Source: Macrostomum hystrix (taxonomy: Eukaryota; Animalia; Platyhelminthes). From it: a stretch of 64,000 nucleotides of DNA. Numbering within the stretch: the first letter of the stretch is position 1; each line of letters begins with the position of its first letter. The stretch covers positions 1,736,001 to 1,800,000 of the forward strand of contig CATNEN010000008.1 in assembly GCA_950097015.1 (NCBI GenBank), written 5' to 3'. A program made the translations under genes and the position numbers. The notes below the pieces were generated by a model. It made no database searches. It worked only from the letters and a program-made list of their open reading frames with translations, and was not told the origin of the DNA. This document shows, one piece after another, positions 10,201-45,766 of this stretch.

Positions 10201-13200
10201 GGTTTGGATGAAACTGGCAGAGTAGAGTCTTCAAATGATAGTGGTGGAGTAGAGTCTTCAAATGATAGTGGTGGAGTAGAGTCTTCAAATGATAGTGGTG
10301 GAGTAGAGTCTTCAAATGATAGTGGTGGAGTAGAGTCTTCAAATGATAGTGGTGGAGTAGAGTCTTCAAATGATAGTGGTGGAGTAGAGTCTTCAGGGTA
10401 GATGATAGTGGTGGAGTAGAGTCTTCAAATGATAGTGGTGGAGTAGAGTCTTCAAATGATAGTGGTGGAGTAGAGTCTTCAAATGATAGTGGTGGAGTAG
10501 AGTCTTCAGGGTAGATGATAGTGTTGGAGTAGGGTTTTCAAGGTAGATGATAATGGTGGAGTAGGGTCTTCAGGGTAGATGATAGTGGTGGAGTAGGGTC
10601 TTCAAGGTAGATGATAGTGGTGGAGTAGGGTCTTCAAGGTAGATGATAGTGGTGGAGTAGGGTTTTCAAGGTAGATGATAGTGTTGGAGTAGGGTTTTCA
10701 AGGTAGATGATAGTGGTGGAGTAGGGTTTTCAAGGTAGATGATAGTGGTGGAGTAGGGTCTTCAGGGTAGATGATAGTGGTGGAGTAGGGTTTTCAAGGT
10801 AGGTGATAGTGGTGGAGTAGGGTTTTCAAGGTAGATGATAGTGTTGGAGTAGGGTTTTCAAGGTAGATGATAGTGGTGGAGTAGGGTCTTCAGGGTAGAT
10901 GATAGTGTTGGAGTAGGGTTTTCAAGGTAGATGATAGTGGTGGAGTAGGGTTTTCAAGGTAGATGATAGTGGTGGAGTAGGGTCTTCAAGGTAGATGATA
11001 GTGGTGGAGTAGGGTTTTCAAGGTAGGTGATAGTGGTGGAGTAGGGTTTTCAAGGTAGATGATAGTGTTGGAGTAGGGTTTTCAAGGTAGATGATAGTGG
11101 TGGAGTAGGGTCTTCAGGGTAGATTATAGTGTTGGAGTAGGGTTTTCAAGGTAGATGATAGTGGTGGAGTAGGGTTTTCAAGGTAGATGATAGTGGTGGA
11201 GTAGGGTTTTCAAGGTAGATGATAGTGTTGGAGTAGGGTTTTCAAGGTAGATGATAGTGTTGGAGTAGGGTTTTCAAGGTAGGTTTGAGTAGTGTTTTTT
11301 AGTTTTTGAGGCAAAAGTATCGATTTTACCTGAGATGCATCGGACAGGACGCCTTCACCGTGAGTCGCATGCTATACAGAATCTCTCCGTTGGGATAAAG
11401 CCGGATTAGTTTGTTCGGGGTAGTCAGGGTGTGCATGTAGGAGCCCTTGCCGTTGATGAAGTAGGTATCCGGCTTCCAGATATTGTCCAGCATCCGCATA
11501 CTAAGAATCAGGCCTGGAGAGTTTGGAAATTCGTATTGGTTGGTGCCGGATGGAGTGAGGTGGTTGGCAGAGAGAGTGAGGTGGCTGGCAGAGGGAGTGA
11601 GGTGGTTGGCCAAGGGAGTGAGGTGGTTGGCCGAGGGAGTGAGGTGGTTGGCAGAGGGAGTGAGGTGGTTGGCAGAGGGAGTGAGGTGGTTGGCAGAGGG
11701 AGTGAGGTGGTTGGCAGAGAGAGTGAGGTGGTTGGCAGAGGGAGTGAGGTGGTTGGCAGAGGGAGTGAGGTGGTTGGCCGAGGGAGTGAGGTTATAAAAG
11801 AGAGTTGGTACGAGACATGTCTGGACGCGAGAAAAATGTTTTCGTCTAGCGATTAAGGACTATTCAAATATATAAAACTCGATTTTTTTAACTGGTAACT
11901 AAGATCTTTGATAATCTATTTTCCTAGTTGCTTAAGTCAAGCCAAAAACTGTACCACTACGTCAGAAATCAATGTCTGCTTAAATTTCCAGATAATATCA
12001 GTCAGTTCTCTTGTCAGTTTAGACCAGAACAGTGTGTTGTACTCAACTGATAAATTTACAATCAATAGTCCGACTAGCATTTACAATTTATGCTATGGAT
12101 GTGGAGAAAAATTCCAACTTAGACAGCCCCTACACAGAATGAGACGAATTCGAGTCTGATTGTTTGTGTTGCTCACATAGAAACCCCGCATGATTTGCAG
12201 CGAAGTTTAAGGATGTACTTGTCAAGTAATGTACAGTCTATCGCGTAGGGTCTTTGAGTTAAGATAAGGATTGGAAGTAGTCTTGTGTGTTATCTTTGAG
12301 TTAAGATAAGGAGTGGAAGTAGTCTTGTGTGTTATCTTTGAGTTAAGATAAGGAGTGGAAGTAGTCTTGTGTGTTATCTTTGAGTTAAGATAAGGAGTGG
12401 AAGTAGTCTTGTGTGTTATCTTTGAGTTAAGATAAGGAGTGGAAGTAGTCTTGTGTGTTATCTTTGAGTTAAGATAAGGATTGGAAGTAGTCTTGTGTGT
12501 TATCTTTGAGTTAAGATAAGGATTGGAAGTAGTCTTGTGTGTTATCTTTGAGTTAAGAAAAGGAGTGCTAGATGACGTGGGTATCGTCATTGAGATAAGA
12601 TAAGGAGTGGAAGTATTATTTGGTGCTATCCTTCAGTTAAGATAAGGATTGGAAGAAGTCTTGGGTGTTGTCCTAAGGTTAAGATTAGGAGGACTGTGGG
12701 GGGTCCTTTAGTCAAGTTGAGGAGTGCAGATTGAGTATTTTCAGATAAGATTAAGTGGCAAAGTACATAAGTACATAAGTGCATTAACTGCTACAGCGGC
12801 ACAGACCAGTGGACATGTTGTTGGATATGTTGAACATGTCGTAGCGCAGTCTCGGATCTTGCCAGCGCTGTCGGAAGTACAGATCGAGCGCGTAGTCCAT
12901 GTGCAGCTCGCTGATGGGTCCCATTGACCGGATGTTGATGTAGGATGTGATCACTGTAGCCTCCGCGTCCTTAACAACGGGCCTTAGAGACTTGTCGTAG
13001 CCTGAGTTTTTTTTTGAAGAGTTGGGTTTAGCCTTTTTGACACGCAAAAATTTAGCAAAATGTGAATACTTTGCTACGCCAGAGTAAAACTTTAGCGAGC
13101 GGATTATCAGACGAATCGCTGGCATTAAAAGCGTGTACTTTAAAAATCAATGGAACGTAGCTGTACTTTTGCGTGCTTTAGAAAATACTCCAATGATAAA

Positions 13201-28364: not shown

Positions 28365-31300
28365 TTAAACCTCGTCCAGAATCTCCTTGGCCGGTGAAGG
28401 GCTGTCGCCGCCGCCGACAAAGATGACGGCGCCCTTCCGGCTCTGACGCCGGCGCTGCGACGGGCCTGCCATGTCAGGGATCAGAATTAAAGGGTAAGAC
28501 TCGGATGCCGCGGATTATCTCCCCATGTAATCTCGTGGATTAACTCCAATATTCTTCCTAGTTCAATGATATCTTCCGATATTCTTCTCAATCCTGTGGA
28601 TAATCTATTAATCCTACTAATCCGGTAGATTATCTCCCAACAGTCCCCCTAATCCGGTGGATCATCTCTTAGTAGTCATCTTAATTCGGTAGATTATCTC
28701 CCAACAGTCCCCCTACTCCGGTGGATCATCTCTTAGTAGTCATCTTAATTCGGTAGAATATCTCTTGACTATCTTCCTAATCCAGTTGATTATCTTCCCA
28801 TATATCCTTAATAATCTCATTGACAAGTAGACTTTACTTCCTAATCTTCCAATAGTCCTTCCAAGTCCTGTTGATAATCTCGACATGCTATCTGCGAATC
28901 ACAGCGAATGTAATCATTGAGTTTTATATTTAAAAATGGCGACAATAGTCCCCACTGTCATTCGACCATAGACAACAGCAGAGGGCGGGCTGCCGTTAGT
29001 TTCAACCTCGTTTCAACACGGTTAGGCTAACTACAACGCAATTTCATTTTCCTATCTCCAAGTAGATATAATTTAAGGATTTTAAAGTATAATAGCGGGT
29101 TCAGTTCAGCTAGAATTAGTTTATCTAAATAACTAAATGTAAAAGTAATAATAAAATGCGCATTTTCAGCCCTGTAAGACCTGAATATTTTTATTCTAAT
29201 AATAATAGTAAACGCAACTTTTTCTTTTTGTTATTTAGAATCCACGCTCCAAATAGAGACAATACTCTCTTATGAAAAATAAACATCTCCTACCTCTCTG
29301 CCCTCTATCTCACCCTTTCAACCCACTATCTCACCCTTTCAACCCACTATCTCACCTTTTCAACCCTCTATCTCACCCTTTCAACTCACTATCTCACCTT
29401 TTCAACCCTCTATCTCACCTTTTCAACCCTCTATCTCACCCTTTCAGCTCACTATCTCACTCTTTCAACCCTCTATCTCACCCTTTCAACTCACTATCTC
29501 ATCCTTTCAACCCTCTATCTCACCCTTTCTACCCATTATCTCACCCTCTCAACCCTCTATCTCACCCTTTCTCCCCTTCATCTTCCCTTTCTCCCCTTCA
29601 TCTCACCTTTATACCCCTTCATCTCACACTTTCTCCCCCCTCCCAGCCCGGCCGAGCCGGCACTCACCGATATAGCTGAGTAGCACTGGCAGGAACACGA
29701 GTCCGTGGAGGGCTCCGAACAGCACAATGCCCAGGTACATGCGGAAATAGAAGATTCTGAACAATTGAGATTTAGCGAAGCCCAGAACAATAATGCCGCC
29801 CAGTTTGGTGAGCGTGATGCCTGAGAACACTGAGCTGCCCATGTGGATGAAGCACTCCCTGGAGCGCAGCAGGCGAGTTGGCTCCTCAGATACTGTGAAG
29901 GCCCGCACCATGTGTGAGCAGAACTCCACCGAGATTCCGAGCGCCTGTAAGTTTCACCATAGACATTGGATAATGCAATAATGAATATGTATAGCAATAA
30001 GTCGCACATGCTGTGTACAGCAGTTCCGTCACACCTAACAATCTACATTTCTACTCCAGCTTAGTTAACTGTTCTTGGTTGATTGGGAAGTCACTGAGCT
30101 CGATTCCGCAGCGAGGCCGCATTCATTTCGGGAGCTTGTCTTGCAATTAGGGAATTAGGGAAGGGGATAGGATCGAGATTAGTGATGGGAATAGGGTCGG
30201 GATTAGGAATGGGAATAGGGTTGGGATTAGAGTAGGGGAAAGAGTCGGGATTAGGGTAGGGGATAGGGTTGGGATTAGGGTAGGGGATAGGGTCGAGATT
30301 AGGGAAAGGGATAGGGTCGGGATTAGGGTAGGGGATAGGGTCGGGATTAGGGTAGGGGATAGGGTCGAGATTAGGGAAAGGGATAGGGTCGGGATTAGGG
30401 TAGGGGATAGGGTCGGGATTAGGGTAGGGGATAGGGTCGGGATTAGGGTAGGGGATAGGGTCGGGATTAGGGAAAGGAATAGGGTCGGGATTAGAGTAGG
30501 GGAAAGAGTCGGGATTAGGGTAGGGGATAGGGTTGGGATTAGGGTAGGGGATAGGGTCGAGATTAGGGAAAGGGATAGGGTCGGGATTAGGGTAGGGGAT
30601 AGGGTCGGGATTAGGGTAGGGGATAGGGTCGAGATTTGGGAAAGGGATAGGGTCGAGATTAGGGTAGGGGATAGGGTCGGGATTTTTTGGAAGGAAATCA
30701 TGGTATAAAGAGAATTTACGCCCTTGAGGGCCAACCTCAAAAAGCACAGTGAGAGTGTACACTGCCTGACGATGAGAAAGTCGGGGCAGATGTACACTCC
30801 TGTGTGAGGTGTGTGCTCAAGGGCATCGGAATGGGCAGAATTGCCTGCTTGCTGTCTCTTGGATGCACACTTTCCCAAGGGCTAAGATTCGAACTCCCGA
30901 CCTCTTGCTCTACCAAATGGGCCGCAGGCTCACCATCACGAGGTTGACCAAGGACACTGCGTTCAGTGTGATGCCCCAGAAGCACATGAATCCCAACATA
31001 GAGTTGAGTATTAGCGCAATTGTCAGCATGATGATAAACGTGGCGTACAGATCCAGGCCAAGAAGAACAAAAGTAACAGCGGCAATGGCCGCGCCGCAAA
31101 TTGACAGATTAACGACAGTATCCCTAGCAATGGTCAGGTACTGCTCGTAGAACACGTAGAACACGCTGTAGGGGAACACCTTGAATTCTGGCGTGTGGCC
31201 AAGCTCCCTACGGAAATGCTCGTTAATCTCATCCGAGATGGCTATAGCCGAACGGTAGGCGTTGGTGAAATCTTCGTCAGTTCTAAGCACGGAATGATAG

Positions 31301-34300
31301 GCCATGAAGTGTGAAGCAGATATGCCGGCCACTTTGGTAGACACGCCGGCCTGTCTGACTAGCGACACGGCGCTAGCGTATGCCGCGTGCCCGCCCTTGG
31401 CGCAAGCAACGCCCGGATTGTCCCGCAGGAAAAAGTCCAAATGGCCATAGAATGTGGCCGACTCTGGCCAGCTCCCGGCGCTGCTAGTGTGGGTGAAATT
31501 CACCCGACATGCGGCACAGTCGCTGCGCTGGCCTAGCGAAGCCGGGCAGAACTGGTCAGGCTCTGACAGGCGATGACGGCAGCATTGGACTGAGCTGCCG
31601 CTGCCACTAGGCGTCAACCAATCAACGTAGTCGTCTAGCCAGGAGCTGGCAGGCGTTGCCAAATAGGAGCCAGCCTGACGATCGAGCTTGGACAGTCTGG
31701 CTAGACGGCCAGTCATGGAATCCTGCGGGCAGCCGGTTCTGCTGCAGACTAAATTGGCGTGAGCCGGCTTCGAGAAATCAATGCTGGGCCCGGCTAGTAC
31801 GAAATAAACCGGCGGCCCCACACTCAGATAGCGACGAACGCCGTCGAAATAGTCGGCCATGTAGCTGTCTACAGGCATGCTGATCTCCTGGTCAAGGCCG
31901 CTGCGAATACTGGGCACAGCGGCCAAACAGATGAATGCCCAGGTGACAAATAGCACCATTACTATTGGACGGCATAGGCGGGAGAAAAGGAATTTAGATA
32001 GGTGACGCTTGAATAGCTGGAATAAGAAGCCGCGGCTCTCCTTCTTCACCGTCGAGCTGTCCTCCGGCCTGCTGGACATCGGCTGCGACTTGCTGCTCAG
32101 GCAGCACAGCACATCGAATCTGGATGGCGATTAGATGGGGTTTGTTATTTGAGCTCAGGTAACTACCCTGAGGTGTCCTCAGGTAACCCTAAATACCTGA
32201 CCCAGTGTCTTCAGGTAACCCTAAATACCCGACCCAGTGTCTTCAGGTAACCCTAAATACCTGACCCAGTGTCTTCAGGTAACCCTAAATACCTGACCCA
32301 GTGTCTTCAGGTAACCCTAAATACCTGACCCAGTGTCTTCAGGTAACCCTAAATACCTGACCCAGTGTCTTCAGGTAACCCTAAATACCTGACCCAGTGT
32401 CTTCAGGTAACCCTAAATACCTGACCCAGTGTCTTCAGGTAACCCTAAATACCTGACCCAGTGTCTTCAGGTAACCCTAAATACCCGACCCAGTGTCTTC
32501 AGGTAACCCTAAATACCTGACCCAGTGTCTTCAGGTAACCCTAAATACCTGACCCAGTGTCTTCAGGTAACCCTAAATACCCGACCCAGTGTCTTCAGGT
32601 AACCCTAAATACCTGACCCAGTGTCTTCAGGTAACCCTAAATACCTGACCCAGTGTCTTCAGGTAACCCTAAATACCCGACCCAGTGTCTTCAGGTAACC
32701 CTAAATACCTGACCCACTGTCCTCAGGTAACCCTAAATACCTGACCCAGTGTCCTCAGGTAACCCTAAATACCTGACCCACTGTCCTCAGGTAACCCTAA
32801 ATACCTGACCCACTGTCCTCAGGTAACCCTAAATACCTGACCCACTGTCCTCAGGTAACCCTAACTAAATACCTGACCCAGTGTCCTCAGGTAACCCTAA
32901 ATACCTGACCCACTGTCCTCAGGTAACCCTAACTAAATACCTGACCCAGTGTCCTCAGATGACCCTAACTAAATACCTGACCCAGTGCTGTCACATGACC
33001 CAAGAACTCACCTGGCCCCAGCCTGCCGTTTGCAGTCCAACGTGAGCAGGGCCACAAAGCAGCTAATCTGTAGCAGGAAATCAATTAGTACAGCCATGCC
33101 GGCGTACAGGGCGAACACTCGCACAGCTGGCATAGGTGTCAGGGCGCCAAAGAAGAATGCCACAGACTCGCTGGCGCTCGACAGCAGCATGCTGGGTCCG
33201 ACTCGACCAACTGCGCGAGCTACTCGAGATTCGACGGAATCATTGAAGCCGCTGTAGTCTCTCTGGTAGGCCTGTACCAGGATGAAGATATTGTCAACTC
33301 CAACTGCCAGCACTAGGAATGGAACGACTTCAACTATGATGAGAGTGGCCGGGTAGCCTAGGAAGCTCCACACGCCCAGAGAGGAGGACACGGCCAGTAG
33401 AACGATGAGCACGCCGGCCAGGCCTAGGGTGACCTTCAGGTCGATCATAACGCGAGAACAAGTCTTATACTGTCCCAGGGTGATTGTTACATAGGCGAAC
33501 ATGACCAGGTAGCTGATGAGGATTGTGAGCACGTCCGAGTGAGACTCGCGTTCTAGCTCGTCCTGGATGCTTCGCTCGCTGCGGTAGCGCAGATCCCAAA
33601 GGTCGGCGTGCTGGCTGGCGTGTCTGCGCACAGCGAGACAGAAATCGAGCAGACATGCTTTTTGTTATTAATTCTCATGGATGATATTAAAAAATATACG
33701 ACTTCTACGATAAGCATGACCTCTGTATTACAGTTTCCCATGTTCTCATTTCCATGACCTCTGTATTACAGTTTCCCATGTTCTCATTTCCATGACCTCT
33801 GTATTACAGTTTCCCATGTTCTCATTTCCATGACCTCTGTATTACAGTTTCCCATGTTCTCATTTCCATGACCTCTGTATTACAGTTTCCCATGTTCTCA
33901 TTTCCATGACCTCTGTATTACAGTTTCCCATGTCTCATTTCCATGACCTCTGTATTACAGTTTCCCATGTTCTCATTTCCATGACCTCTGTATTACAGTT
34001 TCCCATGTTCTCATTTCCATGACCTCTGTATTACAGTTTCCCATGTCTCATTTCCATGACCTCTGTATTACAGTTTCCCATGTTCTCATCTCCATGACCT
34101 CTGTATTACAGTTTCCCATGTCTCATTTCCTTGACCTCTGTATTACAGTTTCCCCATGTTCTCATCTCCATGACCTCTGTATTACAGTTTCCCCATGTTC
34201 TCATCTCCATGACCTCTGTATTACAGTTTCCCCATGTTCTCATCTCCATGACCTCTGTATTACAGTTTCCCATGTTCTCATTTCCATGACCTCTGTATTA

Positions 34301-37300
34301 CAGTTTCCCATGTTCTCATCTCCATGACCTCTGTATTACAGTTTCCATTTCTCATCTTCACTGACCTTCTCACAACCTCCATGAATCCGGCCTCCCAGTC
34401 GATGGCCTTATGCCGAAGCGCTGGATCGTTGCTAACTAGAAAGGTGAGTACAATGGCGCTGGCATTGAGATACTCGGAGCCGTTGTAGCCGCCAAACACC
34501 ACAGCTGGATAGATCGGACCGCCCCATTCGGCTAGGCAGGCTGGGCCCATGGGACTGTTTGTGCAAGAGGCCAGGTGAGTTATCCAGTCGTTCTCTATTA
34601 GCTTTACGCCCATCATCAATTCATCCTCTGCAAACTTTTCTAGCAACAGACGGCTGAGGTTGGACTGAAAATAAATAGAAAATAATACTTTGACATCATC
34701 AATGATCATTATAACTGAAGATCATTATCCCTGAAGCTGCTAACTGAAGATCATTATCCCTGAAGCTGCTAACTGAAGATCATTATCCCTGAAGCTGCTA
34801 ACTGAAGATCATTATCCCTGAAGCTGCTAACTGAATATCATTATCCCTGAAGCTGCTAACTGAAGATCATTATCCCTGAAGCTGCTAACTGAAGATCATT
34901 ATCCCTGAAGCTGCTAACTGAAGATCATTATCCCTGAAGCTGCTAACTGAATATCATTATCCCTGAAGCTGCTAACTGAAGACAATTATCCCTGAAGCTG
35001 CTAACTGAAGATCATTATACCTGAAGCTGCTAACTGAAGACAATTATCCCTGAAGCTGCTAACTGAAGACAATTATCCCTGAAGCTGCTAACTGAACATC
35101 ATTATCCCTGAAGCTGCTAACTGAAGACAATTATCCCTGAAGCTGCTAACTGAAGACAATTATCCCTGAAGCTGCTAAGTGAACACCTGAGGCGTGCCAT
35201 GAAGCACCTTATCAAAGAGTGTCGTAACCAATAACTCACCTGAAAATAGCCCAACGGGCTCTGCACAGCGCAGGTTGTATAGTCAGGCGCCAAAGGTTTG
35301 AAGCAAATGTCTGACAGGGTGATGTTAGTCGAGCTGCCCTCTGTGGTGCTGGCCACCGACAAGCTGGTGACATCCAGCTGCAATTGAAGCACATGACGTA
35401 GGAATTGGCGCCGCAGGGCCGGGCCCAGACTCGGATGCTTGGGCTCATCATAATAGTTAGACGGGTCTAGAGTGAACCGGCTCTGATTTTTCGGAATTAT
35501 GATCACCTGCTCAGTTCGGAAGAACGGCCTGTTAGGATAGAAGTTAGGCGATGATGCTAGTAAGCTACTCACAATGGGAATCTAACAGTAGCATTTTTAA
35601 AAGTACATTTTGGCAAGTAAAAACGATTCTATTCAGTAAAGTCATCGTTCCCATTTCTGTTATGATAATAAAACGACCTAAAAAACTCGCGTGCCAGAAT
35701 CAGGCGAGGAGAGAGAGAGAGAGAATGAGTCACACATGCGCACAAACACACCACACACATGCACAAATATACGCATTTACTGTGCGCAAATCCTTGTATG
35801 GAATTCTATACACAAGGCGTAGAGACACAGGGAGGGGAGGGGAGGGAGGGAGGGCAAAAGTGCATCACGCCATCGGACCACCAAGGCCACACGACACACG
35901 CCCCAACGCACAGCAGCTAAAAATAGCCTGTCCAATATAAGCTGATCGCCCTTGGCTGCAGGGAAGGCCCGGAATGGTTCGGGAAAAGGGAGTTAGACAC
36001 GACACGGCCGTGGGGGAAGAAAGGACGGGAGGGAAAAACTGGGGATTTTTGCCAGAAAGGAATGACCGAACTGAAGGCCTTCGCGTTGTCATGGAAACGT
36101 CCCACAGACTGATAGAAGAGAGGGAAGAGGCAGAGGGCTAATGTGAAAATGGGCAATGAGATAGATAGGGTATGAGGGAGTGGAGGCCTAGACTGATCCA
36201 AAATCTCCCCCGCCAGCCTCTGTGATCCCAGCAGAACAGGAGCTTAACACAGAAAATAAAACCAAGATAACTATGCTGCGTTTAGACGACGATTACAAAA
36301 AAGGAAATCGATTTCGAGGCCACGCCCGATCAAGGGGAGAGAGATGGGATCAAGAAAGGGATTAGAGAAATTCGCTATTCCCTATATTTAGTATTATGTC
36401 CATGAGCATAGCTAAAGCTCTACTGCAAAATGGCGACCACGCCCCATATACTAGAGCAGGGGTCGGCAAACTCCGGCCCGCGGGCCAGATGCGGCCCTCG
36501 AAGCTCCCAAATCCGGCCCGTTGCCCTTTGTGACATCTACAGTGTCCTGTTTCATCTCTCTCGTGTCTAATCTCTTCCGTGTCTCATCTCTTCCATGTCT
36601 TATCTCTCCCGTGTCTAATCTCTCCTGTGTCTCATCTCTCCTGTGTCTAATCTCTCCCGTGTCTAATCTCTCCTGTGTCCTATCGCTCTCGTGTCTAATC
36701 TCTCCCGTGTCTAATCTCTCCTGTGTCCTATCGCTCTCGTGTCTAATCTCACCCGTGTCTCATCTCTCCCGTGTCTCATCTCTCCCCAATCTCATATTTA
36801 TACAGTCAATGCGGCCCGCTGTCGTCTTTAAGGTTCTCTCTTTGGCCCGCCAGCAAATAAGTTTGCCTACCCCTGTACTAGAGGCTCTAGGATCCAGGCC
36901 CAGCTGCGTTAAAAACAGGAGACAAAAAACAAAAAAATACAAATTTCTTAAATAGGCTAAACATCCGTATATATTATAAAGTTCTATAGTCAAAGTTTCT
37001 TTTCCGGAAAGAACTTACACTATTGAAGCTAACGGCTAGTTTAGCAATATAAACTGAAAAGATCTGTAAAATACGTGGGCGACTAAAAATTGCTAAGCTG
37101 ACAGCTGTAGCTATGGGTCCTCCGACAGAATGCTAAGTGGCCACATAGCAACTGCTGTTGCATAAAATTCACTGATCCCCTGAATATAGCATTCAGTGCT
37201 CTCTCTCGGACTATCCGCTTCTAACTGGAACAGCATACTTGCTCAGCAATTATTGTTCTGTTCTAAGCTGGACTCTTCATTGTTATGTAGCAAGAATTGA

Positions 37301-40300
37301 ATTGAATAAACTATTCGGGCTCAATGTTTGAAGGATGGCCATGAAAGGCCGTGAGTTTGATGTCAAAGGCCAGTTTGATGTCAAAGGCTGTGAGTTTGAT
37401 GTCAAAGGCCGTGAGATTGATGTCAAAGGCCGTGGAGTTTGATGTCAAAGGCCAGTTTGATGTCAAAGGCTGTGAGTTTGATGTCAAAGGCCGTGGAGTT
37501 TGATGTCAAAGGCCGTGGAGTTTGATGTCAAAGGCCGTGAGTTTGATGTCAAAGGTCGTGAGTTTGATGTGAAAGGCCGTGAGTTTGATGTCAAAGGCCG
37601 TGAGATTGATGTCAAAGGCCGTGGAGTTTGATGTCAAAAGCCGTGAGTTTGATGTCAAAGGCCGTGAGTTTGATGTCAAAGGTCGTGAGATTGATGTCAA
37701 AGGCCGTGAGTTTGATGTGAAAGGCCGTGAGTTTGATGTCAAAGGCCGTGAGATTGATGTCAAAGGCCGTGAGATTGATGTCAAAGGCCGTGGAGTTTGA
37801 TGTCAAAAGCCGTGAGTTTGATGTCAAAGGTCGTGAGATTGATGTCAAAGGCCGTGGAGTTTGATGTCAAAGACCGTGAGTTTGATGTCAAAGACCGTGA
37901 GTTTGATGTCAAAGACCGTGATTTTGATGTCAAAGGCCGTGATTTTGATGTTAAAGGCCGTGAGATTGATGTCAAAGGCCGTGAGATTGATGTCAAAGGC
38001 CGTGGAGTTTGATGTCAAAAGCCGTGAGTTTGATGTCAAAGGTCGTGAGATTGATGTCAAAGGCCGTGGAGTTTGATGTCAAAGACCGTGAGTTTGATGT
38101 CAAAGACCGTGAGTTTGATGTCAAAGACCGTGAGTTTGATGTCAAAGACCGTGAGTTTGATGTCAAAGACCGTGAGTTTGATGTCAAAGGCCGTGATTTT
38201 GATGTTAAAAGCCGTGAGTTTGATGTCAAGGCCAATGCCATAAGAGCAAGTCCAGCAACTAGGATCGGTCGAGCAATATACAGTTAAGCTGATTGCTTAG
38301 GCAATCACTGGCTAATTAGATCAAACCGCTAATACAAAATATAATTACACAATCCAATTACGGGCTAGCGTGCTAATACTATGATTTGCTTAGCCGCCAT
38401 ACAAATAAATGGATTAGCTAGTTTAGGAAGGCAAATACAAAGCTGAAGGCAAATAGAAGCTGAATAAACTTAGCGTCTAATAATTTATTTGGTAAACTAC
38501 GACAATAATAAAAGTATACAATTTAAAGTCGATGCTAGTTAGTCGTAAAATAAGATAATATCAATATGTAAAAATACTGGATACATACATACGACATACG
38601 ACTAAATAATAGTTGATCGGAGAAATAAGCTGGTTTTATGTTAATTACATTAGGAAGCAGGGACTGGATGGTTATGGAGAATTAGGGGATTGGGAAGCAG
38701 GGACTGGATGGTTATGGAGAATTAGGGGATTGGGAAGCAGGGACTGGATGGTTATGGAGAATTAGGGGATTGGGAAGCAGGGACTGGATGGTTATGGAGA
38801 ATTAGGGGATTGGGAAGCAGGGACTGGATGGTTATGGAGAATTAGGGGATTGGGAAGCAGGGACTGGATGGTTATGGAGAATTAGGGGATTGGGAAGCAG
38901 GGACTGGATGGTTATGGAGAATTAGGGGATTGGGAAGCAGGGACTGGATGGTTATGGAGAATTAGGGGATTGGGAAGCAGGGACTGGATGGTTATGGAGA
39001 ATTAGGGGATTGGGAAGCAGGGACTGGATGGTTATGGAGAATTAGGGGATTGGGAAGCAGGGACTGGATGGTTATGGAGAATTAGGGGATTGGGAAGCAG
39101 GGACTGGATGGTTATGGAGAATTAGGGGATTGGGAAGCAGGGACTGGATGGTTATGGAGAATTAGGGGATTGGGAAGCAGGGACTGGATGGTTATGGAGA
39201 ATTAGGGGATTGGGAAGCAGGGACTGGATGGTTATGGAGAATTAGGGGATTAGGAAGCAGGGACTGGATGGTTATGGAGAATTAGGGGATTGGGAAGCAG
39301 GGACTGGATGGTTATGGAGAATTAGGGGATTGGGAAGCAGGGACTGGATGGTTATGGAGAATTAGGGGATTGGGAAGCAGGGACTGGATGGTTATGGAGA
39401 ATTAGGGGATTGGGAAGCAGGGACTGGATGGTTATGGAGAATTAGGGGATTGGGAAGCAGGGACTGGATGGTTATGGAGAATTAGGGGATTGGGAAGCAG
39501 GGACTGGATGGTTATGGAGAATTAGGGGATTGGGAAGCAGGGACTGGATGGTTATGGAGAATTAGGGGATTGGGAAGCAGGGACTGGATGGTTATGGAGA
39601 ATTAGGGGATTGGGAAGCAGGGACTGGATGGTTATGGAGAATTAGGGGATTGGGAAGCAGGGACTGGATGGTTATGGAGAATTAGGGGATTGGGAAGCAG
39701 GGACTGGATGGTTATGGAGAATTAGGGGATTGGGAAGCAGGGACTGGATGGTTATGGAGAATTAGGGGATTAGGAAGCAGGGACTGGATGGTTATGGAGA
39801 ATTAGGGGATTGGGAAGCAGGGACTGGATGGTTATGGAGAATTAGGGGATTGGGAAGCAGGGACTGGATGGTTATGGAGAATTAGGGGATTGGGAAGCAG
39901 GGACTGGATGGTTATGGAGAATTAGGGGATTGGGAAGCAGGGACTGGATGGTTATGGAGAATTAGGGGATTGGGAAGCAGGGACTGGATGGTTATGGAGA
40001 ATTAGGGGATTGGGAAGCAGGGACTGGATGGTTATGGAGAATTAGGGGATTGGGAAGCAGGGACTGGATGGTTATGGAGAATTAGGGGATTGGGAAGCAG
40101 GGACTGGATGGTTATGGAGAATTAGGGGATTGGGAAGCAGGGACTGGATGGTTATGGAGAATTAGGGGATTGGGAAGCAGGGACTGGATGGTTATGGAGA
40201 ATTAGGGGATTGGGAAGCAGGGACTGGATGGTTATGGAGAATTAGGGGATTGGGAAGCAGGGACTGGATGGTTATGGAGAATTAGGGGATTGGGAAGCAG

Positions 40301-42774
40301 GGACTGGATGGTTATGGAGAATTAGGGGATTGGGAAGCAGGGACTGGATGGTTATGGAGAATTAGGGGATTGGGAAGCAGGGACTGGATGGTTATGGAGA
40401 ATTAGGGGATTGGGAAGCAGGGACTGGATGGTTATGGAGAATTAGGGATTAGGAAGCAGGGATCGAATCATAATTATGGAGAATTAGGGGATTGGGAAGC
40501 AGGGACTGGATGGTTATGGAGAATTAGGGGCTTAGGAAGCAGGGACTGGATGGTTATGGAGAATTAGGGGATTGGGAAGCAGGGACTGGATGGTTATGGA
40601 GAATTAGGGGCTTAGGAAGCAGGGACTGGATGGTTATGGAGAATTAGGGGATTGGGAAGCAGGGACTGGATGGTTATGGAGAATTAGGGGATTGGGAAGC
40701 AGGGATCGGATCATAATTATGGAGAATTAGGGATTAGGAAGCAGGGATCGAATCATAATTATGGAGAATTAGGGGATTAGGAAGCAGAGATCGGATGAAT
40801 ATGGAGAATTAGGGGATTAGGGGCAGGGGTCGATAGTCATAGAGGATTAAGGCATTAGGGATCTGAGTGATTTTATATCGAGGTTTTGATAACTGACTGA
40901 CAACAACATTGTTCGTCCTTTGTAAGTGTGCAGATTTGCCAACCCCAGGAACAGAACTCACCCAAAGTGGGAGTCAAAGTAATCCTTCTGCTGCCTAGCG
41001 GTGCTATCCGGTGCGCTCCACAGATCCACAGGATCGGTGGTTACCTTGAATCGAATGATACCGCAGCTCAGGACAAGGCAGGCCAGCAGGCCGATAGTCA
41101 GGACCAGCACAGGGTGTCCAGACACAGCTCGGCCCCAGGCGGCAAAGGCGGATTCAATTCTGCGATCGAATCCGGCGCAGATTCTCTCCGAGGCCGCGTC
41201 GCCAGAAGAGGAGCCAGATGAGGACGAAGATTTAATCTTGGAGGCGACTAGGGCGGCTTCGGAGTGAGACAGCGGCTGCCTGGTCTGGTGCGGCAGGAAG
41301 CATTCGCGACTGCTCTGTGATGTCATGCCGAAGGTTACACCGTTCGGCGGACAGCTGTCAGTTGAAGCGGCGGCAGCGGCGGCTGCGGCTGTGGCGGCCG
41401 CGGCATCATCTTCTGGATCTTCGATAGCGGCATTGTCGATCGGTTCGGCTGTAGCGTCACCATTTCGTTGACGACGCATCGGCGAGGCTCGCTTCGAAGG
41501 CGGCGAATAGACGTAGAAGTACAGGTTGGAAGCGGAGAAAGCAACAAGGAAGGTGACGTAGCCAATGGCGAGGCCGATGTACCAGACGCTGATGCCGAAA
41601 ATTCGCCAACCGCTTGTGCTGCCAGGCAGTGAGCCGACGTCACTGTTAACGCCGTCAGGTTCGGAGGCGCAGACAGCTGGACAGTCGACACAGGAGCAGG
41701 CGGCGTAGCCTTTGTAACCGCTCTGGCAGGGCACAATGATGGTGTTCATGCCGCACTGGGTTTTAGAAGCAGCGACTGGTGCGGCTGGACGCGAAGTCGA
41801 AGCGGTTGTCAGTTTATTTGTGACAGAATCGGTGACAGCGGTATTATTCGACTTCGCGGAATACACTGATGTTGCAGGCTTTTTAGCTCCAGTTGTTGAA
41901 GTACCAGTTGCCACGGTTGACGACAGCGACACCGTGGCAGTTGTGGTTGCCACGTCCGGGACGGGCTTATGTTTGAGATCGTCGTAGTCGCCAAAGTCAA
42001 AATCTTCCGGTTCGGAGCGACGCACGCGGCCTAAAGCTGGCGATTTGACCGGACAGGCGTTGTCAACCACGCTAAATTTGGTGACAAACGGAGCGTAGGG
42101 ATTAATACTCGGACTGCCAAGAAAATTTAATACATCCAAAACTGTGCACTTCGCAGCCGGAGTTGGATAACAAAGGGAGCCGATGACTTTGTCGTTGCCC
42201 ATCGATACGCTGCGACAGCTGTTAAACATGCCCTCGGCAAACTGCCGACTAACTGTGTAGTCAATCTGCAGAACTCCGCGCGTTTTCGGATCAGTTTCAA
42301 CGACGCGCAAAAACTCGTCCTGCCGAGGCGAGCAGGCGTATTGACAATAGAGGCTGCGAAAGTTGCGCCAGCAGCTGGGACAGCGTTGGAACAGCATGCC
42401 AGCATTGCCAAGACCGGAGCTCAGCGATAACACCTGGCTGGCTGAGCAGCACAGCTGTGGGTGACCGTCGGGACCACGCATGTCGCTCTCTAGCATCTCT
42501 GGACACAGCTGGGCCAGGGTATTCAAAGCACTAGCATTGGTCATAGGCTGGGGTGGTCCATTGTATTCACAGTTCAGCGGCTTGCCAGTAGTTGGGCTCA
42601 GGCCGCACTCATTGTGCCAAACACAGCTTGTGGAAGCCTACAATACATACATCATATAAGTCATGTAAATATATTTGTAGAGCTATTGGAATATCTAGAT
42701 ATCCAATATATTAAAACACTTACCAAATGCACACAGATGGCAAGAACAAATCCAAATGCAGATATTATATTCAT
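28365..42774 (-). CDS. NPC1: NPC intracellular cholesterol transporter 1 (Niemann-Pick C1 family), 8 coding exons, ~1496 aa
   Basis: Exons 42774-42724, 42637-40962, 35528-35240, 34664-34366, 33623-33012, 32119-30934, 29944-29668, 28465-28365, all phases compatible. Signal peptide; [34 protein letters not shown]; TTDPVDLWS; FGPFFRTEQ; [22 protein letters not shown]; GLDQ..P.DSY; VGPPVYFV; [13 protein letters not shown]; GISVEFCSH; [11 protein letters not shown]. Confidence 0.96.
28505..28880. repeat. Degenerate low-copy repeats (GATTATCTCCCAACAGTCCCC..) in the NPC1 last intron
   Basis: Includes a ~62-bp direct duplication at about 28620-28745. Confidence 0.6.
29300..29630. repeat. 21-bp minisatellite (CTATCTCACCCTTTCAACCCW)
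   Basis: Read directly; NPC1 intron 7. Confidence 0.92.
30093..30810 (+). mobile_element. 5'-truncated tRNA-derived SINE (family B) interrupted by a ~570-bp G-rich minisatellite insertion
   Basis: Colinear with the 45121 copy: CTGAGCTCGATTC..GCGAGGCC.CATTCATTT..TTGCAATT [insert] CCCTTGAGGG.CAACCT..GCACAGTGA..GAAAGTC.GGGCAGAT. Confidence 0.75.
30149..30685. repeat. 24-bp G-rich minisatellite (ATTAGGGTAGGGGATAGGGTCGGG)
   Basis: Read directly; four G-runs per unit give G-quadruplex potential. Confidence 0.95.
30840..30925 (-). mobile_element. tRNA-like SINE head (A box TGGTAGAGC, B box GTTCGAATC) lacking the anticodon arm
   Basis: Minus strand reads TTGGTAGAGCAAGAGGTCGGGAGTTCGAATC, starting just after the NPC1 exon-6 donor. 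Confidence 0.55.
32160..32985. repeat. 32-bp minisatellite (CAGGTAACCCTAAATACCTGACCCAGTGTCTT), ~25 copies
   Basis: Read directly; fills NPC1 intron 5. Confidence 0.96.
33715..34355. repeat. 38-bp minisatellite (CCATGACCTCTGTATTACAGTTTCCCATGTTCTCATTT), ~17 copies
   Basis: Read directly; fills NPC1 intron 4. Confidence 0.96.
34710..35185. repeat. 29-bp minisatellite (AACTGAAGATCATTATCCCTGAAGCTGCT), ~16 copies
   Basis: Read directly; fills NPC1 intron 3. Confidence 0.96.
36457..36875. mobile_element. Non-autonomous hAT (Charlie/Buster-type) MITE, 419 bp
   Basis: TIRs CAGGGGTCGGCAAACT and AGTTTGCCTACCCCTG; perfect 8-bp TSD TACTAGAG (36449-36456 and 36876-36883); GGCCCGC subterminal repeats; internal CTCATCTCTCCC-type minisatellite at 36540-36790. 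Confidence 0.9.
37340..38230. repeat. 21/22-bp minisatellite (GTGAGTTTGATGTCAAAGGCC), ~42 copies
   Basis: Read directly; NPC1 intron 2. Confidence 0.96.
38650..40830. repeat. 40-bp minisatellite (GGGAAGCAGGGACTGGATGGTTATGGAGAATTAGGGGATT), ~54 near-identical copies
   Basis: Read directly; NPC1 intron 2; degenerates at the right edge. Confidence 0.97.
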
Positions 42775-44080
42775 CTGAAACAAGGAGCAACAACACTAAT
42801 CAATGATACATATGTATGCATAAAATGAATGATTTTTTCTTTCTTATTAAATATAATACTTATTTAGTGCTTAACAAAAAAGCCATGACCTTACTAGATA
42901 TTACATGGAAGATTCTGATTCTGCAATGAATAAAGTGGCTAAAGTACTACAAAAATATTTTATGCATACAAATAATAATTATTTTTGTCTAACTATACTC
43001 TTATCTAATTAAAAACTACCAACAAAGTTTCCTTTCTTTCCAACAAAGTTCTTAGGCCTGCTAAATAAACTAGCTAAGAAAAGAATAATAACATGTTATA
43101 TCTTTTTAGGTTAAAACCCAATATATAGCTAAAAATTTTTAAAAATAAATTCGTATTAATTAGGTAAAAAAACTAACAGTTACTAATTAAAATAACTAAC
43201 TAACCAAGTAAAAATATGTTTAAATGCTGAACGTATAAATAAAAAGCGGCTAATTAATTCCATAGCAATTGATTTATAACAATGGCTTTTGATATGAGAG
43301 TGTAGAAAAATAAGATCGTGGAGGCTTGATATAGGCTTGAGAAAACAGCAAAAGACACTGGGCAATCACAGAAAAAAGCTTCTTTGTTAGCAACGAAGTG
43401 GCGCCATATTTATCGTAACCTTCGCATAAAAGATAAAGGGGCGCCTAACAAGAACATTCATTTCATACTGTTTAATTTTAACTTATTTCAGTAAAAAAAG
43501 AAAAAAAGAAGCGCGTGCTATTTCCAAAACCATAAATTCGTTGCGATTGTTTTTCTGTTTTATACTTTTTTCCGGATTAAAAAACGTAAATTGTTTTTAA
43601 CTCAGCATTTTAACTCAGTGCTAAGCGTATTCTTGACAAGTTTTACTGTTGGTTATGAAGATAGATAAAACAAAAAGTAATAGTTTTTTGTTAGCAACAT
43701 TACTGAAACTCGCAATATAAAAAGCAGAGTTTAATTGTAACCAAATGGAAGCTCAAATTTTTGTTTAAGTATTTTGCCGACTTAAGCCGGTTTTATGCAC
43801 TTTTATGCACATCACTTCTGCTTTTGTACCATAAAAGTAGTGCCTTTTGAATTAAAACTATTTATTCGAAAAAAGATAAAGAGAGAGTCATACATCTTAA
43901 CCCTTTAGAACGGAGTTACGCTGAAAAATAATTACTTCCAAGCCACAACAGTCACTACAACCACTACAATTGCAACCATTTAATTTTTTCGCTTGTAATT
44001 TATTAATGGGATCAAAAAATTAAGTAAGATTGTTGGAATTTTTCGTTAATAACTTTATCCGAAAATGGTCTTCCGCATTT

Positions 44081-45766
44081 TTAAAGCACCACAAATCCCT
44101 TCGCGGATACAGTAGAGTGTCCGATTAGAGCCACTCGGCCGCGTTCCACGTCAACCTTCAGGCCAAGGACGCCGCCACGTCGGCTACACTGCTTGGCCAG
44201 CAGGTTGTCCCGGCCACCAAGTCTGTTTCTCCAATAAACGGCTAGAACTGTGTGCGCCGCGCCAGTCACGGGGTCCTCGGGTATGCCAACCCAGGGAGCG
44301 AAGTAGCGGGATAGAAAGTCGTAACGAACTTCGCCGCCTTTTTAAAGTAGTAAATTTAAAATATACACAATTAACTTGCTGTGTAATTTATCTAATTAAT
44401 CCTCACTAAAATAAGCACAGCTAAATCAGTAGATAGAAAGAAATCAGAGCTTTCTATTCTGTTTGTATGGCTGTACATAGCTTTCTATGGCACATCCAGA
44501 GGCTGCATAGCTGCTCAGTACACGGAATGGGGCGATGCCACACCGACTACAATATCTACTCCAGCTAATGTTGACACCTTTTTAACAGCTGGGTAAAACT
44601 GAAGCAATAAGCAACTAAGTGTCACGTCCTAGGACACAATTACTTTGTCCCTCGCCGGAGATACGAACTCATAGGTGTCTTAAACAACCTACCAAGAAGT
44701 TTAGATAAACCCTTACGAACCTTCCTCAGCGTCTCCCTCGTCCCTGCGATATCCCTCGCCGCTCATGGTGACAATGACACCTCGAATGTGACTTCCAGTG
44801 GGCGCTGCAGCCATCAAAGCTGCCGCGTCCGGCCGCATTCCTAGAAACTGGTCCGCTAGACTCGGCCCCAGCTCAATCAGCAGCTTCTGCCGATCTGGCG
44901 AATGAGCCAGGCCGATAATGGTCGAGTTAAAGTTTTCTACAATGTCGGCGCCAAGAATCGCCGTCAGCAGGGCCGGCGTGACGTCACGTTCGCCCAGAGA
45001 GATCGGCTCAACCGACCCCAGCGGTAGGTCCAGACTCCACTCATTGGTTTCCGAGTTCCTTTTTAGAAAGATTTCATGAAATAAAAAACTTGATTTGAAA
45101 CCAAGCTACGCGAACCAACTAAGACTAGAGTGGTCTAAGCGTAACCTCTCGCACCAAGGTCCCTGAGCTCGATTCAGCGGCGAGGCCACATTCATTTGGG
45201 GCGCAGCCGCGGAGAGAAGGCTTGGGGCTTGCAATTTTGGCCCTTGAGGGTCAACCTTCACGGCACAGTGAAGTGCATGAAGATGGGAAAGTCAGGGCAG
45301 ATCACACCTGTGTATCTGTGTTTCCATCGAATTCCCAGCTTGAGCAGAATAAAATCAGAAGCCCAACTCACCTAGCAACCGTCAGTCGGCCGCTCAGTGT
45401 GTCGAATTCGATTCGCTGTCCGGCTAGCACCGAGCCGCGCAGGTGCTGGTGGACGGCGGTGGCCGCGGCGAGGGTGGCGTGACCGCAAAGTGCCACCTCG
45501 CACGCGGGCGTGAACCAGCGCAGTCGCATTGGGGCCAGAGCCGCCGTGGCCTTCGAATCGTCGCCAGATTCAATGGCCGCCGACGGAAGCCAGACGAAGG
45601 CGGTCTCGGAGAGATTGAACTCGGCGGCCAGCGACTGCATCTCCGGCTCAGTCGGCAGCTGCTGATCCTTGGCCGGCGACAGAAGCACCACGGCTGCTGG
45701 ATTTCCGCGCCTTCGACGCTTTGTGAAGGCGTCGACTATGTAGAATGGGTATTGCTGCGTTGCCAT
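44081..45766 (-). CDS. PBLD: Phenazine biosynthesis PhzF-like epimerase/isomerase (PBLD family), 3 exons, 329 aa
   Basis: Exons 45766-45372, 45058-44721, 44337-44081, phases 2 and 1 consistent. Motifs: VDAFT..GNPAAV, NLSETAF, RWFTP..EV.LCGHATLA, FDTLSG.L, YDFLSRYFAPWVGIPEDPVTGAAH. Confidence 0.9.
45121..45345 (+). mobile_element. tRNA-derived SINE (family B), antisense in PBLD intron 1
   Basis: A-box-like TAGAGTGGTCTAAGCG and B-box-like GAGCTCGATTC; body shared with 30093-30810. Confidence 0.75.

Follow-up and report, generated by a model that had tools for sequence, protein, structure and literature searches.

A lineage-specific loop with a putative proprotein-convertase site in the sterol-binding domain of a flatworm NPC1 protein

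The N-terminal domain of NPC1 is the entry point of lysosomal cholesterol export, and the beta-hairpin considered here is tightly constrained in both sequence and length across animals and fungi. In human NPC1, this domain (structures 3GKH, 3GKI and 3GKJ; full length, 3JD8 and 6W5R) is followed by the first transmembrane segment (TM1), a cytosolic loop and TM2, and the P202A/F203A substitutions abolish cholesterol binding (PMC6062155). The same N-terminal domain is present in NPC1L1 and in the insect protein NPC1b, NPC1-family paralogues that function in sterol uptake at the gut surface. Dispatched-1, another eukaryotic protein of the resistance-nodulation-division (RND) type with a sterol-sensing domain (SSD), requires furin cleavage in a lumenal domain and has been called unique among the RND proteins in this respect; the site lies in a flexible part of a lumenal or extracellular domain, the two chains produced by the cut remain together, and a loop that would otherwise obstruct access is set free (PMC8630017). 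Here, we describe a gene on the minus strand of a 64,000-nucleotide stretch of the Macrostomum hystrix genome (assembly GCA_950097015.1, contig CATNEN010000008.1, positions 1,736,001 to 1,800,000; this whole stretch is the window, and all coordinates below refer to it). The gene encodes an NPC1 sterol transporter of a macrostomid flatworm, and in its N-terminal domain, an insert of about 100 residues (41753-42055), flanked by two cysteines and carrying a candidate convertase site, occupies a position where the members of the family compared from other lineages have at most 25 residues.

The N-terminal domain encoded in the window is readily recognized. It scores 136.4 bits against the Pfam family NPC1_N (gathering cut-off 27, E = 1.7e-39), in two stretches divided by the insert, and a phmmer comparison with 3GKH aligns query positions 3-185 with positions 3-184 of the human crystal chain (E = 4e-28). 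Structures of NPC1L1 are matched as well, both in sequence (E = 3.5e-17) and in fold (TM-score of 0.80 by target length), and the protein is closer to NPC1 than to NPC1L1 in the phmmer comparison. The domain contains 20 cysteines, namely, 18 that belong to the family, in alignment columns with Cys in 76 to 97 of the 97 aligned homologues, and exactly two additional ones. In the phmmer alignments with 3GKH and 3JD8, Asn, Gln and a Pro-Phe dyad occupy the positions of human N41, Q79 and P202/F203, respectively. The first two of these were reportedly described as sterol-pocket residues of human NPC1 by Kwon and colleagues in 2009. Thus, the fold, the 18 cysteines and the sterol-pocket residues are all shared with the human domain, as is the order of the domain, TM1, the cytosolic loop and TM2.

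The sterol-binding core is encoded in two parts. Core part 1 (42056..42637, minus strand) comprises residues 1-194, residue 1 being the first residue of exon 2 in the numbering used throughout, and ends in a beta-strand after the conserved Pro-Phe dyad. Core part 2 (41654..41752, minus strand) is recognizable in the alignment as the C-terminal cluster C-x9-C-x-C-x2-C-x3-C, in which the cysteines are invariant or nearly so among the homologues. Structure prediction, which had been proposed in a preliminary description made from the sequence of this stretch, yields an AlphaFold2 model, built from a 98-sequence alignment, with a mean predicted local distance difference test score (pLDDT) of 80. 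The core is modelled with confidence (pLDDT above 90, and 87-97 in the Cys cluster), a beta-strand at residues 185-191 leads into the insert, and the pLDDT drops below 50 at residues 201-279 of the insert. A Foldseek search with this model retrieves 3gkh_A (E = 5.5e-20, TM-score of 0.86 by target length). The model thus predicts an intact NPC1-type sterol-binding fold from which the insert emerges as a disordered excursion.

The insert starts 11 residues past the Pro-Phe dyad and is bracketed by the two additional cysteines, Cys195 (42053..42055, minus strand) and Cys295 (41753..41755, minus strand), with 99 residues between them. From the first cysteine on, it consists of an 8-residue stub, the proprotein-convertase consensus RVRR (42017..42028, minus strand) with a Ser next to it (42014-42016), a 12-residue acidic and aromatic patch that contains GDYDD (41978..42013, minus strand), and a disordered tract of 74 residues rich in Ser, Thr and Ala (41756..41977, minus strand), in which Ser and Thr together account for 37% of the residues, and Ser, Thr, Ala, Pro, Val and Gly for 73%, and which includes one N-x-T sequon. 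RVRR is the sole R-x-[KR]-R motif among the 559 residues of exon 2; it lies between the signal peptide and TM1, in the lumenal domain, and in the model the pLDDT is below 50 at residues 201-208, in keeping with an exposed and flexible site. On re-reading, the motifs named in the preliminary description and the positions that it had assigned to them and to both cysteines are all correct. In the alignment to the human protein (3GKH, 3JD8), 123 residues of the window protein face 28 residues (205-232). The two extra cysteines, the convertase motif, the acidic patch and the tract rich in Ser and Thr also set the window protein apart from human NPC1. Anchored at either end, the tract forms a loop rather than the stalk that had been proposed for it. 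The window contains the insert only once.

That the insert forms part of the mRNA is apparent from the transcripts. Four public sequencing runs, from one organism and one study, contain all sampled words of the stretch, and the spliced contigs of two of these runs, X3 and X4, provide the RNA evidence. Exon 1 (42724..42774, minus strand; 51 bases), which includes the start codon and a hydrophobic signal peptide of 17 residues, is identified from the sequence and the RNA contig joint, and is separated from exon 2 by an 86-base GT..AG intron (42638..42723, minus strand), the joint of which, 42636>42723 (cut +1; CT..AC on the plus strand), is present in the contigs of both X3 and X4. Exon 2 (40961..42637, minus strand) is an open frame of 559 codons that runs from the N-terminal domain with the insert through TM1, the cytosolic loop and TM2 into the middle lumenal domain. 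A 4155-base RNA contig spans 40961-42636 without a difference or a gap and is joined to exon 1, and its match to the genome ends precisely at the predicted 40961 donor; exon 2 is covered with 0 differences and 0 gaps in record 23 of the X4 contigs. No splice joint is found inside 41753-42055 in the spliced contigs of X3 and X4, and these contigs cover the segment without a gap, so that the reading of the insert as an intron or an artefact is rejected. The insert is coding sequence that is kept in the mRNA and lies, as the preliminary description had it, within a single uninterrupted exon, open from 42637 to 40961.

The possibility that an unspliced intron or an assembly error has been mistaken for coding sequence, which the preliminary description considered unlikely, is therefore next to negligible. 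Contigs spliced at both borders of the exon traverse the insert with 0 differences, and its G+C content (0.54) is close to that of exon 2 (0.57), unlike that of windows in the flanking AT-rich non-coding sequence (about 0.3). The frame is open in two species, and contigs of X1 and X2, from two further organisms, contain the insert with 5 and 1 substitutions, respectively, and 0 insertions or deletions; the X1 substitutions are I300V, S257A and K252N along with two synonymous ones, none of them in RVRR or the acidic head. Nothing was found that supports the artefact explanation, and the sole caveat is that contigs drop rare isoforms, so that a minor transcript skipping the insert would escape.

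Among NPC1 proteins, an insert of this size at this site is unusual. An exhaustive HMMER search of 1.84 billion representative sequences produced 1218 relatives, and the anchor-to-anchor spacing at the insert site was measured in about 130 of the best 150. In these ∼130 representatives, the spacing ranges from -12 to 25 residues and is typically ∼7, compared with 100 in the window protein. The representatives belong to many animal phyla and include a fungus; those identified by name, all of them insert-free, come from crayfish, clam, horseshoe crab, sea spider, acorn worm, mite, cricket, bedbug, nematode, sponge and rust fungus. Given this distribution of spacings, the insert is lineage-specific rather than a common feature of invertebrate NPC1 proteins, the latter being an outcome that the preliminary description had named as damaging to its proposal. 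The representative search yielded no full-length close orthologue, just two fragments that start past the insert. A protein word search with the insert region gave no matches, one with the whole exon matched only the Macrostomum lignano protein P0002, and one with the domain alone, at the over-strict cut-off of E = 1e-15, gave no match; these blanks, which probably stem from low-complexity words and from the length filter, are barely informative. A metagenome scan recovered just distant, intron-rich eukaryotic NPC1 genes with 30-40% identity that carry no information on the insert site, and no planarians, flukes or tapeworms were identified among the taxa looked up for the relatives.

The nearest named proteins are those of M. 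lignano, and a Logan contig, L001, encodes a relative that, past the insert, shows 79% identity with the window protein. In L001, the frame continues upstream of the called gene and reads as the insert, with a Cys followed by Pro, a Ser-rich stub longer than that of the window protein, RRVRRS, an acidic patch, an 81-residue tract rich in Ala, Pro, Thr and Ser, and Cys-Gly-Met-Asn, for a total of 115 residues versus 99 in the window. The five residues of RVRRS are identical in the two proteins and three of the five codons differ synonymously. The acidic patch of L001, PNDGDLDPFGEFDE, keeps the pattern FG-x-aromatic-D-acidic, and GDYDD of the window aligns with GEFDE. The tract of L001 contains 32% Ser and Thr and 17% Pro (37% and ∼7%, respectively, in the window).

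Substitution rates between the window gene and L001 were estimated by the Nei-Gojobori method; synonymous change is saturated, with a synonymous divergence (dS) of about 1 to 2. The ratio of nonsynonymous to synonymous divergence (dN/dS) is 0.18 for the insert head, the same value as for TM1 (0.18, 82% amino-acid identity), and 0.05 for the last 75 residues of exon 2, including TM2 (91% identity). The Ser/Thr tract, in contrast, retains its composition and rough length at 24% amino-acid identity, with a proportion of nonsynonymous differences (pN) of 0.57. Judging from the low dN/dS together with the synonymous changes in the RVRRS codons, the head of the insert is under purifying selection at the protein level and the tract is not. 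Glycosylated linkers typically keep their composition and approximate length rather than their sequence. Loss of the R-x-x-R motif or of the Cys pair in close relatives would have counted against the original proposal; both survive in L001 at saturated dS, which fits a disulfide-closed loop that a convertase could nick. Sulfation of the tyrosine in the acidic patch, which was part of the same proposal, fares worse: the residue is Phe in L001, so that Tyr is not a conserved feature and the idea is weak.

The two cysteines that bracket the insert appear to have a history of their own. Cys 2 is conserved in L001, in the M. lignano orthologue P0002 (A0A1I8F8T8), a truncated model that starts inside a Thr-rich tract, 9 residues before this cysteine, and in the M. 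lignano paralogue P0004 (PAA85170.1, locus L002). Cys 1 is conserved in L001 and P0004, and is absent from nearly all other representatives. In the paralogue, the insert site reads C-x8-C in uninterrupted genomic sequence, and a comparable arrangement, C-x10-C, occurs in just one other of the ∼130 measured representatives. As in the window gene, a single exon of the paralogue, with ..FG|gt at its end, covers everything from the N-terminal domain through TM1 and the loop to TM2, and both extra cysteines lie at the same hairpin; unlike the window gene, the paralogue lacks RVRR, the acidic patch and the Ser/Thr tract, and the identity over the domain is 46%. The view that the Cys pair arrived with the insert is not supported, given that the paralogue has both cysteines around just 8 residues. 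Because the outgroups are short and free of these cysteines at this site, the likely order of events is that a small disulfide-closed hairpin turn evolved in macrostomids first and that this turn then expanded in one of the paralogues. The even number of cysteines in the domain (20) is compatible with one further disulfide, and the bracket cysteines probably form this tenth disulfide. With its two NPC1 paralogues, Macrostomum brings to mind the split between NPC1a and NPC1b. At locus L002, positions 10880-11100, between the Cys cluster and TM1, the assembly also has a frameshift, which is due to a mistake in assembly or to decay of this copy.

Taken together, these observations suggest a scheme in which a disordered, O-glycosylated loop at the tip of the hairpin is nicked by a furin-type convertase, producing a two-chain domain held together by disulfides; on the sequences compared here, we consider this scheme about equally liable to prove right or wrong. 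The loop, ∼100 residues long and specific to this lineage, sits at the beta-hairpin tip of the lumenal sterol-binding domain, having probably grown inside the older two-Cys bracket, and consists of a conserved head of ∼25 residues (the stub, RVRR, Ser and the acidic aromatic patch) and a fast-evolving tract of ∼75 residues to which O-glycans are most likely attached. Under the scheme, the domain would face the secretory and endolysosomal lumen, so that RVRR|S would be exposed to the convertases of the late secretory and endosomal compartments, and a furin-type proprotein convertase could cut after RVRR. The cut would release no fragment because the bracket disulfide and the family disulfides across the site would hold both chains together. 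[quoted passage not shown] A stronger version of the scheme, in which the cut turns a disulfide-closed lid into the tether and thereby switches sterol loading from NPC2, or direct uptake, on or off, seems rather improbable.

Several observations, besides the rare isoforms mentioned above, weigh against cleavage and O-glycosylation of the loop. The residue two places past the putative cut is Glu in the window and Pro in L001, and so may be suboptimal for furin, and the insert head is readable in only one diverged relative, L001. The tract is not a textbook mucin domain rich in Pro, Thr and Ser: its Pro content in the window is low, as given above, and Tandem Repeats Finder (TRF) detects no tandem repeat in 41753-42055, for which reason an origin of the tract from tandem repeats is rejected. 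Tandem repeats are typical of mucins and are not required in O-glycosylated linkers. Low-complexity runs are also present in the enlarged cytosolic loop of the same protein; expansions of this kind seem to be tolerated in this lineage even where they serve no obvious role.

The competing explanation that deserves the most attention, although we regard it as unlikely on balance, retains the disulfide-closed O-glycosylated loop and dispenses with the cut, so that the uncleaved loop would act as a shield or spacer protecting the domain from lysosomal or gut proteases, and the head would be conserved for another reason, for example, as an internal salt-bridged turn, as a docking site for a lumenal partner such as NPC2, or for metal binding. 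The location of the NPC1 N-terminal domain at the surface of the lysosomal glycocalyx (PMC6062155) is in line with a shield, as are the retention of the composition of the tract without its sequence, the acidic aromatic pattern, which is kept as strictly as the basic motif, and the Pro at the second position past the putative cut in L001. What speaks for cleavage over this explanation is that an exact convertase consensus followed by Ser, in a disordered lumenal segment, survives saturated synonymous divergence, and that convertase sites of this kind in secretory-pathway proteins are usually cut. A more radical alternative is that the insert is a functionless low-complexity expansion, produced by slippage or drift at a permissive hairpin tip, with only residual likeness in the head. 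This, too, is improbable: the near-neutral evolution of the tract, the second enlarged loop, with its poly-Ala run, in the same protein and the predicted disorder of the insert are all in line with it, whereas the constraint on the head at saturated dS, with synonymous changes in the RVRRS codons, the retained length (99 versus 115 residues), the open frame in both species and the lack of a tandem repeat or microsatellite signature speak against it. Finally, sulfation of the acidic Tyr has been considered as the functional core of the insert, given that this Tyr lies in the strongly acidic context GDYDD; with Phe in the corresponding GEFDE of L001, the conserved element is not the Tyr, and we give this explanation little credence.

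Dispatched-1 provides a precedent within the superfamily for a furin cut of this kind; the parallel is limited in several ways. The furin site of Dispatched-1 is in ECD1, which corresponds to the middle lumenal domain of NPC1, and Dispatched lacks an NPC1-type N-terminal domain altogether; its fragments are held non-covalently, unlike the disulfide-held chains envisaged here, and its cleavage has been demonstrated experimentally, whereas that of the window protein is predicted. Proteolytic regulation among RND proteins has so far been reported for Dispatched only (PMC8630017). If NPC1 of this lineage were indeed gated by a convertase, it would be the second eukaryotic RND transporter under furin-type control, after Dispatched, and the first case with the NPC1 N-terminal domain as the regulated part. 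In any event, the loop is a natural experiment on what this domain tolerates and on whether proteolysis can regulate a transporter of the NPC1 type. Transgenesis and RNAi are available in the laboratory model M. lignano, which also has a paralogue free of the insert, so that the question is directly testable; even so, the outcome would concern an elaboration specific to one lineage rather than a general principle.

The rest of the protein follows the NPC1 plan. The linker between the N-terminal domain and TM1 (41609-41653) is rich in Ser, Gly and Asp and, unlike its human counterpart, contains no proline-rich stalk. It is followed by TM1 (41507..41608, minus strand), a hydrophobic stretch, by the cytosolic loop between TM1 and TM2 (41117..41506, minus strand), and by TM2 (41048..41116, minus strand). 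The cytosolic loop, which belongs to the gene and not to the insert finding, comprises 130 residues, about twice the human length, and includes the poly-Ala run. A block of 28 residues past this run (41282-41365) is unchanged in L001 and almost unchanged in M. lignano, and looks like a conserved cytosolic motif. Further downstream, the minus-strand open reading frames (ORFs) at 35117-35572, 33008-33631 and 30910-32112, read exon by exon, resemble the exons for the middle domain, the SSD and the C-terminal part of NPC1; the M. lignano orthologue P0002 bears PF12349 and PF02460. A G-rich repeat (39773-40447) is located in the intron downstream of exon 2, within a region of strong GC skew (about +0.8 over 38500-40500), and tandem repeat arrays in the NPC1 introns, at 29272-30762 and 37300-38300, contain long spurious ORFs on both strands.

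In the upstream neighbour (43855-45766, minus strand), RNA contigs confirm introns at 44337-44719 and 45058-45370, and the first exon reads like a PhzF/PBLD-type isomerase. An element in one of the introns of this gene (45145-45227) reaches an RNA contig depth of 1700-2000, compared with ∼20, and occurs in many contexts, which suggests a dispersed, transcribed repeat; a tRNA origin of this element is unsupported, with no tRNA found by ARAGORN.

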